Shown one piece after another: positions 1 through 43,000 of a stretch of DNA of 64,000 nt. Position 1 is the stretch's first letter. Each line of letters begins with the position of its first letter. The notes beneath the pieces were generated by a model. The model searched no databases, had not been told where the DNA came from, and saw nothing but the letters and a program-made list of their open reading frames with translations. A program made the position numbers and the translations under genes. The stretch is from Salpingoeca rosetta (Eukaryota > Protista > Choanoflagellata): contig JAWQFM010000006.1 of NCBI GenBank assembly GCA_033442325.1, positions 1,019,200 through 1,083,199 of the forward strand, read 5' to 3'.

Positions 1-11
1 CGCGCGCGCGC

Positions 12-75
<64 letters not shown>

Positions 76-1217
76 TGCGTGTACGCAAGTGAAAGAGAGC
101 GTGTGTGTGTGTGTGTGTGCGTGTGTGCGTGTGTGTGTTGTGTATGTGTGTGTGTGTGTGTGTGTCGACTTGCACTGCGTTGTGTTTGTACCATTGTGCC
201 ACAAATGACCCACGCCAATGTGAACAGAGCTCTGTAACAGTTGTGACAAGTAGAATCAAGTCACCCCTAATCACCTGAGCATATGTGCCGACAATCTGCA
301 TGGTTTCTGCGAGCGGAAGCCACTTGGCCTGCTGCTCCTTTGTCCCTTGCCCTTTGATGCAAGGAATGAACATGGCCTGCCAGCAGATTTGTGATTACAC
401 CACAGAGCACGCGCGGCAGAATGAGAGACCCACGCTTGTGTGTGGGCAAGAAAACAATAAAGTCGAGTGGGAAGAAACCACCTTCTCACTTGGGCAAGAA
501 GGCGCGTGGCATTGTGGGTCTCCCAGTATCAAACCGCACGGGAAGCATGCGCACATTACCCAGTGGAGCCCGACAGGCAGCTGTTCCCGGATACAGCGGC
601 GAGCATAGATGGCGTCCTGGTCCTTCCACCCGTGCATGCGCACCAGCTGTACGAACCGCACGGTCTTTTCAAGCGCCCGCTCATACCTAAGGCGCCACCA
701 CGCAATGTAGGAAAGGAGAGGGTGATGTTGCGTGTGTGAGTACGTGTGTGAGTTGCAGGGGCCACAAAGATTGCACGCAGCGATGGAGAACGCACGCAGC
801 GATGGAGAACGCACGCAGCGATGGAGAATGCACACAGCGGCAGTGAGAGCAGTTTACAGCGGTGGGTAGTCCACACAGTGATGAGGAGTGCAAAACAATG
901 ATGGGGAGTGCAAAACAGTGATGGGGAGTGCAAAACAGGAATGACGGGAACTGTTACGTGGTGGATAATTCATGTACACTGCCTTCACGATGCCACAGAG
1001 CAAGCGCTGTCACTGACCTGCGAGTGCGATCACAGAAGTAGTAGTCGTCCACGCTCATGACTTCGTCTGCTTCGATGACCCGGCGAATCTGCCTGCGCTT
1101 CTCCACAACCTCTGGCGATCCAGCGAGGAGAGCCATCACAGCATCCACATCCATCTCTGCCCCTTTCCTTTCCTCATCCAGTGGGCCCCTTCCGCCCACA
1201 CCAACACTGCCATCCAT
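1..1217 (-). CDS. ACOX1: Peroxisomal acyl-CoA oxidase, 5' part (gene runs off the left edge)
   Basis: Exons ~1217-1018, 686-560 and 376-275 join through GT-AG introns. They give MDGSVG...LDEERKGAEMDVDAVMALLAGSPEVVEKRRQIRRVIEAD...RYERALEK...PVGLHWAMFIPCIKGQGTKEQQAKWLPLAETMQIVGTYAQ, matching the ACOX N-terminus up to the GTYAQ(TE) motif. Confidence 0.92.
773..839. repeat. 19-bp minisatellite, ~3.5 copies, in an ACOX1 intron
   Basis: GCACGCAGCGATGGAGAAC repeated; a 20-bp repeat follows at ~886-936. Confidence 0.9.
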
Positions 1218-1388
1218 CGTCGCTTGCTTTGCTTCTCGCTTCTTGCCTCGTTTGTGCTCTCCTCCACACACGCAACAACAGTGGTCCTGTGTGCGGAAAA
1301 TTACAGAAAGATGTGCCCATTCTTCACGATCGATGACGAAGCAGCCAAACAAGCGAGGAAGAAGAAGGAAGACGATCAACACAGAAGA
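1218..1388. promoter_or_regulatory. Probable bidirectional promoter (ACOX1/VPS45) containing GAAAATT at 1296-1302
   Basis: 171 bp between divergent start codons. The heptamer is shared with four other divergent intergenic regions. Confidence 0.6.
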
Positions 1389-5986
<4,598 letters not shown>

Positions 5987-34712: not shown

Positions 34713-36423
<1,711 letters not shown>

Positions 36424-36740
36424 TGGGTCGATGCCGTCCCACACCCATACCCTGCTTGCCTCACTCACTCGTTCTTTTCACCTGTGCGTGGTTCGCACTG
36501 ACGCATCAACCGCGCACACCGGAATCGTTCTGTATGTATTTTGCCTCCATTGCTTCTATTGCCATGCTGATGCTGTGTGTATGTAGTGTGTGTTTATTGG
36601 GGAAAACTCGCTGAAATCTTACACTGCTCCCAGCGCTCAAAGATGGGGAAGGCAATTGCGGCAAAACAAAGGGCAGCGGTGCGTATGGGCGAATGTGTGT
36701 GAGAGCACGCGCCTCATAGACAGAAAGAAAAGTGAATCAA

Positions 36741-39420
36741 TAGATAGATAGATAGAAACCAAGTGCCTCGGTGCGAGGCTCATGTGTAGTGCTGCGACTG
36801 TCGCTTAGACAGTTGCAGGGGGCTCTGTTGCGGCCGGGCCACCCGGGCTTCGTGAGGTCACTGGGGCGCTGCGTGGCTGTCCCTCATCGTTGTCGGTGGT
36901 GGCGGTGGCAGCGGCGGTGGCAGCAGTGCCGTTGTTGCTGTCATTGCTGCGCTGGCCGCTGTGGCCGGGGGGTGTGGTCTGCGGATGCTTGCGCTTGCGG
37001 GTGCGCTTGCCCTGTTGGTGGTTGCGCTGGGCTTGAGCGCGCGCTCGTTGTACCGTCTGGGTGCTCTGGCGGGGAGTGTGTGTGTCTCCCGCCCGGACCG
37101 AGCCCGGCTGGTTTTTGCCCCGCTTGTCGTGAGGCATCTGGCCGATGCACCGGAGGTTCGCGTAGCACTCAGCCTTGCATCTCGCGATGGACAACACTTG
37201 CCGCCAGTACGTGCTGCTGTGCATGGAGGTAAAAGTGCGCACGTGTGGTGGTGTTTGTGGGTCCGTCGTGGACATAAGGTCGCTGCTGAAGAACTTCCGG
37301 AACTTCGAGCCCCAGGCGCCCGAGCCGGCCTCGATCGCAATCGGCACAAATTTGAAGTCGCCCTGGTCGCGTAGGATGGCCTGGTACTTCTTGATCTTGC
37401 GTTGTTCCGCCTGCGACGCCGCGTAGAGGTTGACTTTGGCGGCCTGTGGTTGGTACGAGCTGGCCGCGGGGGCGGCAAACACGAGGTCAAACACGGTGTA
37501 ATCGCCAGACTTGTCGAAGCTGAGGATGTCACCGCGCTTGCCGCCTGCGCCTGGGAAGCCGGAGGGCTCTTGTGTCGCGCGGCGGTTGAGCTGCATGAAG
37601 GCCCGGGCAATGGCGTTCTGCATGTAGTCGTGCCGGCCCGTTCTTGTGGAGTCGCAGACTTCTGCGTGGTCCAGCTTCATCTCGCGCCCGCAGCAGTAGC
37701 AGCTGCCTGATGCACGCGACTCGGAGCAAGGTGTCCGAATCCGCTGGCTCAGAGCAAACCGAAACACCTTGTCCGACATCCGTAGGTCCTTGCAGCTGGG
37801 CAGGGCCAGGAGCCACTCGTAGCCGCCGTGCAGGCTGGCTCCTCGTTGAATGGCTCGGTTGCGTGGGTTCTCGTCCCAGCCCGTCTTCCTGTCCATGATC
37901 TGGGTCAGGAACTGCTGCAAGCTGCGAGCGTCGTGGTTTAGAACGTCCCTCGTGTCACGGGGGCCGTCGTCGCCGAGGTGCAGATCCGCGATGGCTTGCG
38001 CTATCTCCGCCTCCAATTCGGCGCCCGGCGTGGTGTATGCTTGGAAAGGGTGGTGAGGGCTCTTGCTGAAGCTGCAGACGGAGCCGAGGAAGGCGGCGGG
38101 GGCGACGCTTGTCTGCCTCCGTAGCCCAAGGCCTCCTTGTTTGATGGGTCGTCGTGCCCGCGTCAGGGCCCGCGATGACAGGGGCTTGAAGGCGCCCATC
38201 ATGCGCCGAAGCTGCTCCGCGATAATGTCGTCGAGCGCTTCGCAGTGCTCCTTCGACCGACGGGTCGTGCGCATGAAGTAGCCGGACTTGGTCGTAATGC
38301 AGTACCGAAGGAACTGGAAGACCAGTTGCGCCGGCAAGTGGGCGCTCGCCAGGTCGAGAGCCCTCCGTGTCTCGTCGAGGTGGGATGCCTCGTATGGCCC
38401 GAAGAGGGGGACGCCCAGCACTTTCGCGGTCTGGTCGCCGTAGGGGATGACGACCGTCTTGTCTTCATTGATCTTCAGCCCCGTCCGGCGGATCTCCATG
38501 TCGAGCCGCTCCGCGGCCGCCTTGACGTCATCGCGCGGGCCAACGATGTAGGTGTCATCAAGGTACGCGACGACGGTGACCGTGGGGTGGGCCTTGTCGG
38601 TTTCCTTCAGCGCGTGGATCGTGGCGAGGGCAAAATACGCCGGTGAGAGCGGACCGCCCTGCGCGATGCCATCGCGCATGTGGAGGGTGTCGCCACCCGG
38701 CGTGACGACGACCGGTGCCTGGCCGTACGTCGCCAGGAAGCAATGTGCGAGGCTCGGGAAGCGGCGGCTGATGGCGTCGTAGATTGAGCGTCGCGTCACT
38801 GCGCCAAAGGCGTTGGAGATGTCGAGCGCCTGCGCCACGTGGTCCCGGTGGGCCCGCAGGTACTCACGCAGGCCATGCACGATGCACTCTGTGCCGGCGG
38901 GGATGCCGACGCCGAGTTGGTGCGGGCATAGGGCGTCGGCGATCTCGGCCTTGTGCGCGCTGAAGACCGTCTTCTCCAGGAGCTTGGCGATGCTGTCCAT
39001 GGGGACCACAGGTCGGATGCCGCCATTGCTCTTCGTCAGCGGCACCACGCGTCCACCCATGAGGAGTGGCATGCGCTTCCGAAACTTGCCATGATATAGC
39101 GCGTTGACCAGCTTCGGCAGGGATGCTCCGTGCTCGTGCAGCTGCGCCAGGGTCGCGGGCGTGAGCCCGGTGGCGCCCGCCGCCGCCTGCCTGTCCAGCG
39201 TGTACAGCGCATCCGTGATCTTTTCTGCCGGGAGATCGTCGATGGTGGTTCTGGCGAGTGGCCCGTCGCCGCCAGCGTCGCCGCCGCTGTTGTCGTCGCC
39301 CCTGCTGGGCAGGCCTGCGCTGCCTGTCGTGATGATCTTCTGCTTCACCTGCTCCTTGATGTCGTCGCTCCACTCCGCGACGGAGGCGGTGTCGCGGAGG
39401 ATCGAGTGGCCTTTGGACAT
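36741..39420 (-). mobile_element. Non-LTR retrotransposon of the restriction-like endonuclease (RLE) type, CRE-clade-like; 5' boundary uncertain
   Basis: Intact intronless 871-aa ORF, a ~50-nt 3' UTR with two hairpins, and a (TCTA)4 tail at 36741-36756. The region lacks the microsatellites seen in host DNA. No target-site duplication found. Confidence 0.9.
36805..39420 (-). CDS. Reverse transcriptase + CCHC knuckle + restriction-like endonuclease polyprotein
   Basis: RT motifs: PLTKSNGGIRPV, HQLGVG, LDISNAFG, GIAQGGPLSP, VVAYLDD, GLKINEDKT, KVLGVP, GGLGLR. Then CYCCG..DHAEVC, RHD, and EPSG..KRGDI..FDLV..EQRKIKKY..FVPIAIE..GAWG. Confidence 0.95.
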   Translation of the reverse strand: MSKGHSILRDTASVAEWSDDIKEQVKQKIITTGSAGLPSRGDDNSGGDAGGDGPLARTTIDDLPAEKITDALYTLDRQAAAGATGLTPATLAQLHEHGASLPKLVNALYHGKFRKRMPLLMGGRVVPLTKSNGGIRPVVPMDSIAKLLEKTVFSAHKAEIADALCPHQLGVGIPAGTECIVHGLREYLRAHRDHVAQALDISNAFGAVTRRSIYDAISRRFPSLAHCFLATYGQAPVVVTPGGDTLHMRDGIAQGGPLSPAYFALATIHALKETDKAHPTVTVVAYLDDTYIVGPRDDVKAAAERLDMEIRRTGLKINEDKTVVIPYGDQTAKVLGVPLFGPYEASHLDETRRALDLASAHLPAQLVFQFLRYCITTKSGYFMRTTRRSKEHCEALDDIIAEQLRRMMGAFKPLSSRALTRARRPIKQGGLGLRRQTSVAPAAFLGSVCSFSKSPHHPFQAYTTPGAELEAEIAQAIADLHLGDDGPRDTRDVLNHDARSLQQFLTQIMDRKTGWDENPRNRAIQRGASLHGGYEWLLALPSCKDLRMSDKVFRFALSQRIRTPCSESRASGSCYCCGREMKLDHAEVCDSTRTGRHDYMQNAIARAFMQLNRRATQEPSGFPGAGGKRGDILSFDKSGDYTVFDLVFAAPAASSYQPQAAKVNLYAASQAEQRKIKKYQAILRDQGDFKFVPIAIEAGSGAWGSKFRKFFSSDLMSTTDPQTPPHVRTFTSMHSSTYWRQVLSIARCKAECYANLRCIGQMPHDKRGKNQPGSVRAGDTHTPRQSTQTVQRARAQAQRNHQQGKRTRKRKHPQTTPPGHSGQRSNDSNNGTAATAAATATTDNDEGQPRSAPVTSRSPGGPAATEPPATV

Positions 39421-40015
39421 TTCTCTTTGTAATCATGATCGAACAGCGAGCATGTCAACAGCCACATCACAGCACATCAAACACAACAATTGCTTCTTGG
39501 ATGGGCAGCAAAGCGGCACGCTACACATGCACCATCGGGGCCAGCCAAGAAGCGCACCAAGCAAAAGCGTACAACGAGCTGGCTAATACGCAACACAAGC
39601 ACACGTTCTCGCACACGTGAGCGCTCACCTGGCACAGCACACGAAATACACCTCACACAAACATAACGTGTCCAATTAACACCACTGAGGCAACGGGAAA
39701 GCTGAGGTGAGAGGGAAATGGGACGAAACAGAAGACACAAGCGAGCGAGGAGCATATGAGCAACGCACACTGACGACGCTCGCGCCTGTCCAAGCAAAAC
39801 AGGCCAGAACAGAGGAATTAAGGCCAGGGCAAGGAGGAAGGAAGGAAGACAGAAACGCGAGCAAGGGAAGAAGGGAAGAAGGGAAGAGGGAAAGGGCAAA
39901 GGGGAGGAGAAAGAAAAGAAACGATTGGGGAGATCGGGGAAGGAAAAGAAGTGCAGCCATAAGAGGCCGCAGGCACAGCGGCGATGCAAGATGCATCAGT
40001 GCAATGGCAGACGCA

Positions 40016-43000
40016 TTACGCGCTGGTGCCATCGCGGTACCGCAGCTTGAGCTCGCGGCCCTTGACAATCTTGCCCCAGCCAATGAGGCGCCAGTGCTTG
40101 TCAATACGGCGGCTGAGTGCAATGGCCTCGCCAGGCTGCATCAAGCAATGCAATCAGAGAGCGAGCAGCAAAGGGTGAGTGGCATCACAAACCTTAGCAT
40201 CAGGTCAAACTGCGCAACACTGATTAACACGCACCAGACCTCAACTAGGCACCACCCACAACCCCAACTTCCACACACACACACATACACGCACACGCAC
40301 GAAACAGGCATCAGAACAGAAACCAACATCGCTCTCCTCCCTTCCCCCCCCCCCCCCCTCGACAACCAGTCTTGATGGTTCACCCACTGACCTCTGTGCA
40401 GACGGGCTGTGTGAGCGAGACCTTGGCAAGATCGCCCTTGACGCTCTGGACACGGCAGCCGGTGGACAGGGAGCCAATGTTGACCATAATCACCTCGCCC
40501 TTGCCCAGCTTGCTGACCTTGGCGGCCTTCTTGTCGCCCTCCGTCTTGACACCAAGGAGGCGGCGCAGCAGGAAGTAGTGGATCTCAAGCTCGCTGTAGA
40601 CAGGAGGAAGAGCACCAACGCCGCCGAGGACCTGACCAACAAGACGGTCTGCACGGCACAGCGTGGGGTCGATCAGCGTGCCCACGCCAATGAGGCCGCC
40701 AGGCACAGCATACTGCAGCGAGTTGCGCTCGGCAAAGAGCGACACAACCCGCGACTTGATGGGCATGCACTTGAACTTGTTGCCAGAGTCCTTGGTTACA
40801 ATACCAGGGCGCACCTCAATCTCCTGTAGTTGGACAGACACAGACCGAGAGAGACAGACAAACAGAGGCAGAGAGAAACGAAAGTGGAAGTATGCACAAG
40901 TTCAGGTGAGGCAAGGAAACCCACCAGGAAAACGCAAAATAACACACACGCACACACGCACACACACACACACGCACACACACACAACAGCAGCAGCAGC
41001 AGAAAATGACTGAAAGCAGGTCCACCAGTGCAAGGGGGGTCGGACCTGTCCATGCTTGAGGATGCCGTGGAGGATACTGCCGCCGGCAACGCCGCCCTGC
41101 AGGTCATCGACCTCACACCCGGGCTTGTTCACGTCAAAGGAGCGGATGACAATGAGGCGGGGGTCGGAAAGGAAGTCGCGCGTGGGGACGGGGATGTAGC
41201 GAGCAAGGTACTCGCACACAGCCTCCACGTTGTACTTGAGCTGGGCCGAGATGGGGATGATGGGGGAGCCCTCCGCCACCGTACCTGTTGGTGTTGAGCG
41301 TTAAAGAGTTGAGTGTTGAATGTTGAATGTTGAATGTGGAGTGGAGCACGTGGCACGAACGGAGTCAGGACGCAGACAAGAACAAGACGACACGACACAC
41401 ACAGTCGAGCTGCAAACCGCTGCAACGGCGCACACACGTACAAACACAGAGAGATACACACATGTATGCACACACGAGCACACATGCACGCATTTACACG
41501 CGCATGCATGGCCCATGCGGATCGACGCACCTTTGATGAAGGCTGTGATCTCCTCCTTTTGTTGTTTTGCCTGGACCTTGGTGATGAGGTCAACCTTGTT
41601 CTGGATGACGAGAATCTCCTTGAGCTTCATAATCTCGACGGCAGCAATGTGTTCCGCAGTCTGGGGCTGGGGGCAGGACTCGTTGCCCGCTGTGTCGTCA
41701 AGAACAGTGGACGTGAGCATTGGACGCAGCACAGCGCAAGCAGCAACCCTAGCAGCAGCAAAAGCACAGCAGAAAAGGCAGCAGCAGTGCACACACATCA
41801 CATAATCACACGCGCGCACACCACTCACATACACGCGCACGAAAGACCGACATGCACACATATCACACACACACACAAAAGACAAATATACACACACCAA
41901 TGAGGAGGAGAGCGGCGTCCATGACGGCGGCGCCGTTGAGCATGGTGGCCATGAGGATATCGTGACCAGGGCAGTCAACAAAGGACACGTGGCGAAGCAA
42001 CCGCAGGTGACCCTCGCAGCCGGGGCGTGGGCAGCGGGACACATCAGGGTGTGAGCTGCCTTGGGACCTGGTGCGCGACAAATACGGTGCGTGCGCATGC
42101 ACATGCATGGTGAGCAAATCAGGTAGGTACGACGGTCACCACTACCACCGCCACCGCGAACGAGCTTCAACCTCGGAACTCATCAAAGGGTCGCATGCAT
42201 GCATGCATGCGTAAAGGGCACTGCCGCAACTGCCACACAACAAGTTCCCGACATGTCTTTGCAGAAAGGAACTCACTTGTATCTGAGAAGAGGAGGGCAC
42301 GCACTGCACCTGTAGATCTACAACGAGGTTGCAGCACGAGGGGCAAGTACAGCACACAAAGACGCGACGCAAGCATGAGGATATGGACGCGAAACAAATG
42401 CATGCGTGCACGCATGCAGCGCACACATATGTGCGCCATCCACGACGAGACACATGGCAACGCTGCATACAGTCGTGGAAGCTGCTTCAGCAAACCGAGT
42501 GGGTGCATGTTGCAAAACACCACCGGGTTCTGGTGCGCAAACAGCATGAACGTGGGTGCGCGAGGGGCTCACCTTGGCGTTGGCGTAACCAAGCTTGATG
42601 GTGATGTTTCGTCGCAACTCGCTCTTGAATCGAACTGTCTGCACGCCAGAGATGGCCTTCACAAGCGTGGACTTGCCGTGGGCGACATGGCCGATGGTGC
42701 CTGCGTGACATCGAGAACAGGGAGGGAGAGGAGGCGACGAACGTGAGTCAAGAGATCAAGCAACATGCGTATGTGTGTGTGTATGTGGTGTGCATGAATG
42801 CATGCATGCATATGTGGCGAGAAATTCGAGAACACGGACGTGTGCGGCATACACGACTTGTGCGCCTTTGCATTATTCAGTGCTTTGCGCGACGCACAAT
42901 TGGCGCGCAGACTCGTGTGCGCGCATGTGCGTGTGTGTGTGTGTGTGCTTGTGGAGGAGGTGTATGAACGTTGCGTGGGTTGTGTGGTCTTGAAAACATG

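Follow-up and report, generated by a model that had tools for sequence, protein, structure and literature searches.

A probable 5'-truncated copy of a 4.3-kb restriction-like endonuclease LINE in Salpingoeca rosetta, from a family that favors A/C-rich and (CA)n targets

The subject of this study is a retrotransposon copy in a 64,000-nt stretch of the genome of the choanoflagellate Salpingoeca rosetta (GenBank assembly GCA_033442325.1, contig JAWQFM010000006.1, positions 1,019,200 to 1,083,199 of the forward strand; this whole stretch is here called the window, and positions are counted from its first letter). The minus-strand sequence at 36592-39422 is quite probably a 5'-truncated copy of a retrotransposon with one open reading frame (ORF) and without long terminal repeats (non-LTR), an S. 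rosetta element of about 4.3 kb whose family (family A) favors A/C-rich or (CA)n targets. The copy is 2,831 bp long and corresponds to positions 1506 to 4336 of an element of approximately 4,336 bp, with both boundaries taken from other copies in the genome. An original prediction, made from the sequence of this region, had described an intact element with an uninterrupted ORF of 871 amino acids (aa) containing a reverse transcriptase (RT) with a YLDD motif, a CCHC knuckle, and an endonuclease. All of these components are present in the open frame at 36805-39420 (minus strand), and its first codon is an internal methionine of the full-length protein.

The 5' boundary was established by searching the 55.4-Mb genome of S. 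rosetta for other copies. We found approximately 30, mostly 5' truncated, among which two longer ones (C4:601606-605937 and another in C11, about 1032244-1036580) match the window from 39422 and then continue for an additional 1,505 nt upstream. The two agree with each other across these 1,505 nt, while their 3' flanks differ, so a segmental duplication does not account for the similarity. The reading frame stays open through 500 additional upstream codons, in frame with the window ORF, and the full-length element measures about 4,336 bp (4,332 bp in C4), with an ORF of 1,273 aa counted from the first in-element ATG and thus a protein of at least that length. This ORF is uninterrupted in C4, while in C11 it is frameshifted and partly N-masked. 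RNA reads at 39422 also run on into the upstream sequence of C4/C11, which indicates that full-length RNA exists. N runs interrupt the C11 copy (L004, G000:C11) and also the 5' flank of a copy in C18 (L019, G000:C18:543183-546444), which limits the analysis of both.

The window copy begins only 2 nt ahead of the internal ATG, and in this way it looks like an intact gene for 871 aa although its N-terminal region is missing. Its apparent start methionine aligns with an I/L/V position inside the motif G-x-[ILM]-S-x-A-x-x-L...LHP, conserved in the 13 distant relatives aligned, and the protein of a second S. rosetta family (family B, locus L028, 38% identical) aligns collinearly straight across it. 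Both C4 and C11 contain the missing 1,505 nt (about 500 codons), a part also conserved in family B, and with them the window copy has lost the N-terminal Cys/His region, so the description of the element as intact no longer holds. The copy is probably dead.

At the other end, homology among copies extends 150 nt past the TCTA run, to ...TTTTCCCCAATAAA(C) at window position 36592. The terminal 32 nt, GTGTAAGATTTCAGCGAGTTTTCCCCAATAAA, gave 51 genomic matches with up to 3 mismatches and none in a reversed control; 40 distinct 3' ends out of these 51 were read and make up the flank survey. Divergence starts directly after AATAAA in the 40 ends read, the next base being C in 32 of them. As the copies diverge immediately after AATAAA or AATAAAC, the element ends at 36592, with the terminus ...CCCCAATAAAC (36592-36598, minus strand) and a 3' untranslated region (UTR) of 213 nt (36592-36804, minus strand) that is common to all the copies long enough to include it in an 18-copy alignment. 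This UTR ends in AAUAAAC, without poly(A). The (TCTA)n run that had been taken for a tail replacing poly(A) is a polymorphic internal microsatellite, (TCTA)4 at 36741-36756 (minus strand) in the window copy and with 3, 4, or 5 units in the 18 aligned copies, with conserved sequence on either side and homology resuming beyond it. Likewise, the TAGA-CAGA-AAGA stretch once placed just outside the tail is conserved 3' UTR sequence in all 18, and the proposal of a minimal 3' recognition module of about 65 nt arose from the wrong 3' boundary.

The copies carry the footprint of target-primed reverse transcription (TPRT): a common 3' end (51 matches), 5' ends scattered from position 1 to position 2789 of the 2,831-nt window copy, and target site duplications (TSDs). 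Judged from this structure, family A integrates by TPRT. The TSDs are 8 to 14 bp long and A/C rich, and are visible where the flanks are nonrepetitive, as in L007 (GACACGCTTGTGCA, 14 bp), L009 (CAACTACGACAAC, 13 bp), L089 (AACAAACAAACA, 12 bp), L056 (ACACCAGAA, 9 bp), and L072 (AACAAGAAC, 9 bp).

Family A inserts in one orientation and strongly favors targets that, on the sense strand of the element, are A/C rich or of the (CA)n type. The 40 nt downstream of AATAAAC average 83% A+C over the 40 copies, and 30 of these reach at least 80%, a level found in 7.5% of random 40-mers of the window and in 5.3% of distal flanks (binomial p of about 6e-26); a G+T-rich downstream flank was seen in 0 of 40. 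Runs of at least four CA units are found downstream in 17/40 copies and immediately upstream in 12/39, with the copies L008, L012, L016, L027, and L081 lying inside a (CA)n tract, and the upstream flanks have an A+C content of 0.68 versus a background of 0.50. The window copy follows this pattern, as its 3' end abuts a degenerate, A/C-rich (CA)n flank (sense strand, CACACACTACATACACACAGC; 36571-36591, minus strand) of the type found in 30/40 copies, with no TSD evident. No gene target is common to the flanks of the 40 ends, which are diverse A/C-rich or (CA)n sequences, and no rDNA was found among the 3' flanks of the copies. The original prediction had correctly seen that the flank is neither a spliced-leader gene nor a telomere, and microsatellite-like targets are indeed used. 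The repeat that it thought would guide priming was another one: instead of TAGA/CAGA, the relevant sequence is the (CA)n or A/C-rich tract downstream of AATAAAC.

The stretch after AATAAAC might instead be a tail made by the element itself (through untemplated addition or slippage by the RT, or as copied (CA)n read-through), the insertion sites being otherwise random. The filler fits this idea, since C/A-rich nucleotides, from 1 to 22 nt, are frequent between AATAAA(C) and the TSD (22 nt in L007, 11 nt in L072), and so does the fact that the bias is stronger downstream (83% A+C) than upstream (68%). However, the upstream A+C content is still well over the background, the copies with CA runs directly upstream lie inside the repeat, and the TSDs are themselves A/C rich, so we consider a purely element-made tail unlikely. 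Less probable still is random insertion followed by persistence just in the harmless simple repeats of a gene-dense genome. This compact genome is rich in (CA)n, with about 5 to 8% of random 40-mers holding a run, and repeat targeting as a way of avoiding harm has been discussed (Kojima and Jurka 2015, PMC4640811). Yet harmlessness would not set a strand orientation, and the absence of G/T-rich sense flanks in 40 copies points to a mechanistic cause over mere survival; besides, most copies are very young (97 to 100% identical), which leaves little time for filtering.

In C25, we also found two truncated copies arranged head to tail (L018/L029/L035, G000:C25:471225-471786) and joined by CTTC, in the order AATAAAC-CTTC-GCACTTGG... 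This joint is covered by 21 to 53 RNA reads per run, so the tandem is transcribed. Two more 3' ends, those of the downstream copy of the tandem and of L017, also run ...AATAAACCTTC.

These footprints are data, whereas which strand is nicked, what the N-terminal region does, and where the filler comes from are inferred. On the model of R2 and of LINEs (long interspersed nuclear elements) specific for microsatellites, the full-length protein would nick the G/T-rich strand, a step in which its N-terminal Cys/His region may contribute DNA binding. The resulting ...TGTG 3'-OH would pair with a short C/A-rich extension of the RNA after AAUAAAC and prime reverse transcription, and this extension could derive either from read-through of the (CA)n flank of the donor copy or from added nucleotides. 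A staggered second nick 8 to 14 bp away would generate the TSD, and incomplete synthesis would leave the 5' truncations.

The copies are 87 to 100% identical to the window copy, mostly 96 to 100%. Window and C4 differ by 24 synonymous and 7 nonsynonymous changes, with a ratio of nonsynonymous to synonymous differences per site (pN/pS) of 0.10, and L003 gives 0.11; such low values indicate that the lineages diverged while the protein was under selection. Transcription of the family is also seen, and most of it comes from copies other than that of the window. Three stranded RNA-seq runs (2026) show a sense coverage of 120 to 400x over the last ~900 nt of the element and 4 to 60x further 5'. Their loose read ends reveal the C25 tandem junction as well as 5' flanks that belong to other truncated copies (L007, L022), and the letters read at most variant sites are those of other copies (e.g., 11/12, 30/32, 16/17 at 38498). 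The idea of a recent family is supported, as most of its copies are 94 to 100% identical and it is transcribed and under purifying selection.

For the window copy itself, transcription is weak at most, with read-through as a plausible source. Its own letter appears in 40 to 48% of the reads at 39227, near the 5' end (two runs), and nearly no sense coverage was found in its 3' flank. In the 5' flank (39423-39461, minus strand), many RNA molecules of the three runs end at 39461, some 40 nt before the 5' junction of the copy, and depth falls from 80-150 to 12-36 over this junction. The gene upstream is eIF2-gamma-like (39461-40500, minus strand), has a 256-nt intron at 40136-40391 confirmed by RNA-seq (CT..AC on the plus strand, i.e., GT..AG on the gene strand), and produces an mRNA with its main 3' end at about 39461, without a nearby AATAAA. 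It is very doubtful that the truncated ORF is expressed, for instance by read-through from eIF2-gamma, and works as a shortened RT-endonuclease or a domesticated gene. The frame is open, and the proportion of window letters at 39227 suggests that its 5' part is transcribed in sense at a low level; nevertheless, deeper in nearly all reads belong to other copies, the 3' flank is almost devoid of sense reads, the copy has a sibling of 98.6% identity, its start lies within a conserved motif, and the eIF2-gamma mRNA ends upstream of it. Antisense reads were detected over the 3' region of the element and the flank beyond (36200-37063; plus-strand RNA, first mate on the minus strand, depth 8 to 70), which suggests that there is a plus-strand transcript downstream or that siblings embedded in host genes are transcribed in antisense.

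Within the 3' UTR, the two small hairpins of the original prediction do exist, like the (TCTA)4 run. GCGAC-A-GTCGC (36794-36804, minus strand) is invariant in the 18 copies, and GCCUCG-CAC-CGAGGC (36765-36779, minus strand) appears in both the minimum free energy and the centroid folds, with invariant arms and a loop that is 5 nt longer in L020. Perfect GC-rich hairpins of these two sizes occur in the window at 0.09 (GCCTCG type) and 0.32 (GCGAC type) per 100 nt, so that about 0.2 and 0.7, respectively, are expected by chance per 216 nt. The stop codon plus 3' UTR (216 nt) folds at -46.5 kcal/mol versus -47.8 +/- 4.2 for shuffles (z = +0.31), with no excess stability. Neither stem varies in any of the 18 copies, a subfamily of 92 to 94% identity among them, so the hairpins offer no covariation. 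The sole family B copy examined, L028, is cut inside the endonuclease and has no 3' UTR to compare. The case for a functional 3' module is therefore not made by these features, although the hairpins may have a function, given that R2-type proteins bind their own 3' UTRs. As for an intact, autonomous 2.7-kb element with a (TCTA)n tail, a two-hairpin module of about 65 nt, and priming guided by TAGA-like repeats, we give it almost no credence, as its open ORF starting with ATG, its hairpins, and its (TCTA)4 are all real, but the longer copies continue for 1,505 nt upstream in frame, homology among 51 copies goes 150 nt past a TCTA run of polymorphic length, the hairpins are not above chance, and the stability of the UTR is nothing unusual.

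Several observations weigh against the reading of the window sequence as a truncated copy from a family with A/C-rich or (CA)n targets. The 5' boundary of the element rests on two full-length copies, and no clear TSD was seen for the window copy, C4, or C11 in the flanks inspected, which for C4 meant the downstream one. The preference is not absolute, as 10/40 copies lie in flanks with less than 80% A+C, and part of the A/C richness may be carried by the element in its 1 to 22 nt of filler and not by the target. The reads enter many different flanks, which prevented a clean mapping of the 3' ends of the RNA, and give no clean poly(A) signature at AATAAAC; the nick on the G/T-rich strand is proposed by analogy.

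The element is an RLE-type LINE, that is, one with RT, CCHC, and a C-terminal restriction-like endonuclease (RLE). In the full-length form, an acidic N-terminal region is followed by three conserved Cys/His clusters (CCDDANCWVKDH; CPFGNC...HIRTAH; CTKCAYVCSPRHKC), a conserved helical region, the RT, a linker, the CCHC, and the RLE. In the numbering of the window ORF, and always on the minus strand, the RT comprises aa 130 to 338 (38407-39033; Pfam RVT_1, E value of 1.4e-15), with the YLDD active site at aa 286 to 289 (38554-38565). The CCHC zinc knuckle CYCCGREMKLDHAEVC, which aligns to that of R2, lies at aa 574 to 589 (37654-37701), and the RLE core (37384-37575) is formed by E618, D631 (KRGD), D645 (VFDLVF), and K675 (RKIKKY). 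In an alignment of the window protein with 41 relatives (42 sequences), D288 and D289 of the active site are invariant, as are C574, C577, H585, H597, D645, and K675, while conservation of C589 and E618 is 90% or higher.

A HMMER search retrieved 7,053 relatives at an E value of 1e-3 or lower, the best nonself matches being about 27 to 33% identical and usually covering the RT through the endonuclease. The top 20 are mostly unnamed metagenome proteins, and those with a name belong to Cafeteria and Closterium, each annotated as hypothetical. In word-based protein searches, the ORF and the 42-sequence profile brought up nothing beyond S. rosetta models and a few proteins that are unnamed or unrelated, with no named CRE, NeSL, R4, or HERO reference among them. 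The profile matches solved R2 proteins (E value of 6e-46) across RT, linker, CCHC, and RLE, while LINE-1 ORF2p matches the RT part alone. An AlphaFold (AF2) model (predicted local distance difference test score of 82, predicted template modeling score of 0.80) has R2Tg, R2Pm, and R2Bm as its top Foldseek matches, with E values from 5e-22 to 2e-19, and the LINE-1 RT was also matched. With a YxDD RT, a CCHC and PD-(D/E)xK nuclease after it, and a TPRT footprint, family A has the features of the RLE-LINE supergroup (CRE/R2/R4/NeSL/HERO).

Family B (L028, G000:C3:230282-233684, ORF 10-3165, plus strand) shares with family A the N-terminal Cys/His clusters, RT, CCHC, and RLE, and the copy is broken off inside the RLE and followed by A12. 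In a quick maximum-likelihood tree, the two families are sisters (Shimodaira-Hasegawa-like approximate likelihood ratio test, 100) and share a long stem, and none of the 43 other sequences included is close to them. The only close database proteins found with the ORF are two S. rosetta gene models, PTSG_04523 (94% identical) and PTSG_02606. The first (RVT plus abhydrolase, 1,375 aa; L091, GL832964.1:1024062-1047180) resembles a chimera in which a retrotransposon copy has been fused to coding sequence unrelated to transposable elements (TEs), and the second (a C48-peptidase-like N terminus plus a LINE C terminus, 645 aa; L092, GL832960.1:172563-183768) resembles the same kind of chimera. Three distant relatives can be added as single cases, two of them (P0020 and P0049) on metagenome contigs. 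An antisense gene for tRNA-Leu(GAG) (L093:5993-6066) lies some 200 nt downstream of the end of P0020 (1,096 aa, about 31% identical), which may belong to a tRNA-associated lineage. P0049, among the nearest outside S. rosetta, has an A/C-rich 3' region with a CAAT repeat (L095:4660-4770), whose reverse complement lies upstream of the ORF (L095:440-495), and nothing notable was found in the 3' region of P0041.

Two partial pol fragments of S. rosetta had already been reported as putative SLACS non-LTR retrotransposons, a label given following a protein screen with RepeatMasker (Southworth et al. 2019, Mob DNA 10:44, PMC6875170). They come from the same organism and are the same kind of pol sequence as family A, and by their coordinates they plausibly fall in copies of this family, namely, one in C1 near 592-594 kb and the full-length copy in C4, while family B may be the second SLACS-like family of that survey. 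We found no more recent TE annotation of S. rosetta in the literature. The term CRE-like is, for this family, the published RepeatMasker label only. Members of the CRE clade (CRE1/2, SLACS, CZAR; Cnl1, MoTeR) are also RLE-type elements with N-terminal Cys/His motifs, but they target spliced-leader genes or telomeric repeats, an insertion specificity that we did not find in the S. rosetta family, whose targets are A/C-rich microsatellites.

In its choice of target, the closest counterpart is Togen of fish, NeSL/HERO-related RLE LINEs specific for (TG)n microsatellites, and some HERO families also target microsatellites (Kojima and Jurka 2015, PMC4640811). Like Togen, family A inserts into CA/TG repeats and has N-terminal zinc-binding motifs, RT, and then CCHC plus RLE; the host is a choanoflagellate instead of a fish, the preference extends to A/C-rich nonrepeat sequence, and the element ends in AATAAAC. 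The resemblance is functional only. No Peptidase_C48 was detected by Pfam in the full-length C4 protein, the C48-like match of PTSG_02606 sits upstream of the TE-derived part of that model, and the Ulp1-like protease known from nematode NeSL is not universal in that clade (PMC4640811).

R2 (R2Bm, R2Tg; structures 8GH6, 9NL3, and 9DOU) gives the best profile and structural matches over RT, linker, CCHC, and RLE, and both elements have a single ORF, a defined 3' end without poly(A), and frequent 5' truncation. However, R2 inserts in 28S rDNA and the S. rosetta element does not, identity is about 15 to 17%, and the single-sequence match has an E value of only 0.02. The combination of zinc finger and Myb typical of the R2 clade was not found either, as Pfam detected no Myb domain in the full-length C4 protein. 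R2 is homologous but distant. Among insects, the LINEs Mino, Waldo, Kibi, Koshi, and Dong were reportedly described as microsatellite specific by Kojima and Fujiwara in 2004. The first four have an apurinic/apyrimidinic-type endonuclease (R1 clade), whereas Dong belongs to the R4 clade, has an RLE, and targets (TAA)n. They share with the S. rosetta family an oriented insertion into simple repeats and a 3' end continuous with the repeat, which suggests that primer and template pair when TPRT begins.

Family A is an ordinary kind of element, and RLE LINEs targeting microsatellites were already known, but no description of a full-length copy from S. rosetta existed. For this model of animal origins, the TE survey in print contained only partial non-LTR fragments, and the present analysis fills the gap with a complete delimitation of the element (ends, full ORF, 3' UTR), its coding capacity and copy number, TSDs, a quantified strand-specific target bias, a sister family, and RNA evidence. 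Two seemingly chimeric gene models, PTSG_04523 and PTSG_02606, have been flagged, and the window copy is a caution that an intact-looking ORF can be a 5'-truncated LINE. We also suggest, tentatively and with a little less than even confidence, that families A and B form a choanoflagellate-specific lineage of RLE LINEs in which oriented (CA)n and A/C-rich targeting evolved independently of fish Togen, with priming by pairing between the nicked (TG)n strand and a C/A-rich extension after AAUAAAC. If true, no earlier non-LTR retrotransposon from the nearest unicellular relatives of animals would have been both delimited in full and still transcribed. In S. rosetta, the family is a source of insertion polymorphism associated with (CA)n, and it adds a unicellular holozoan case to the short list of microsatellite-homing RLE LINEs, which bears on whether early LINEs were target specific.

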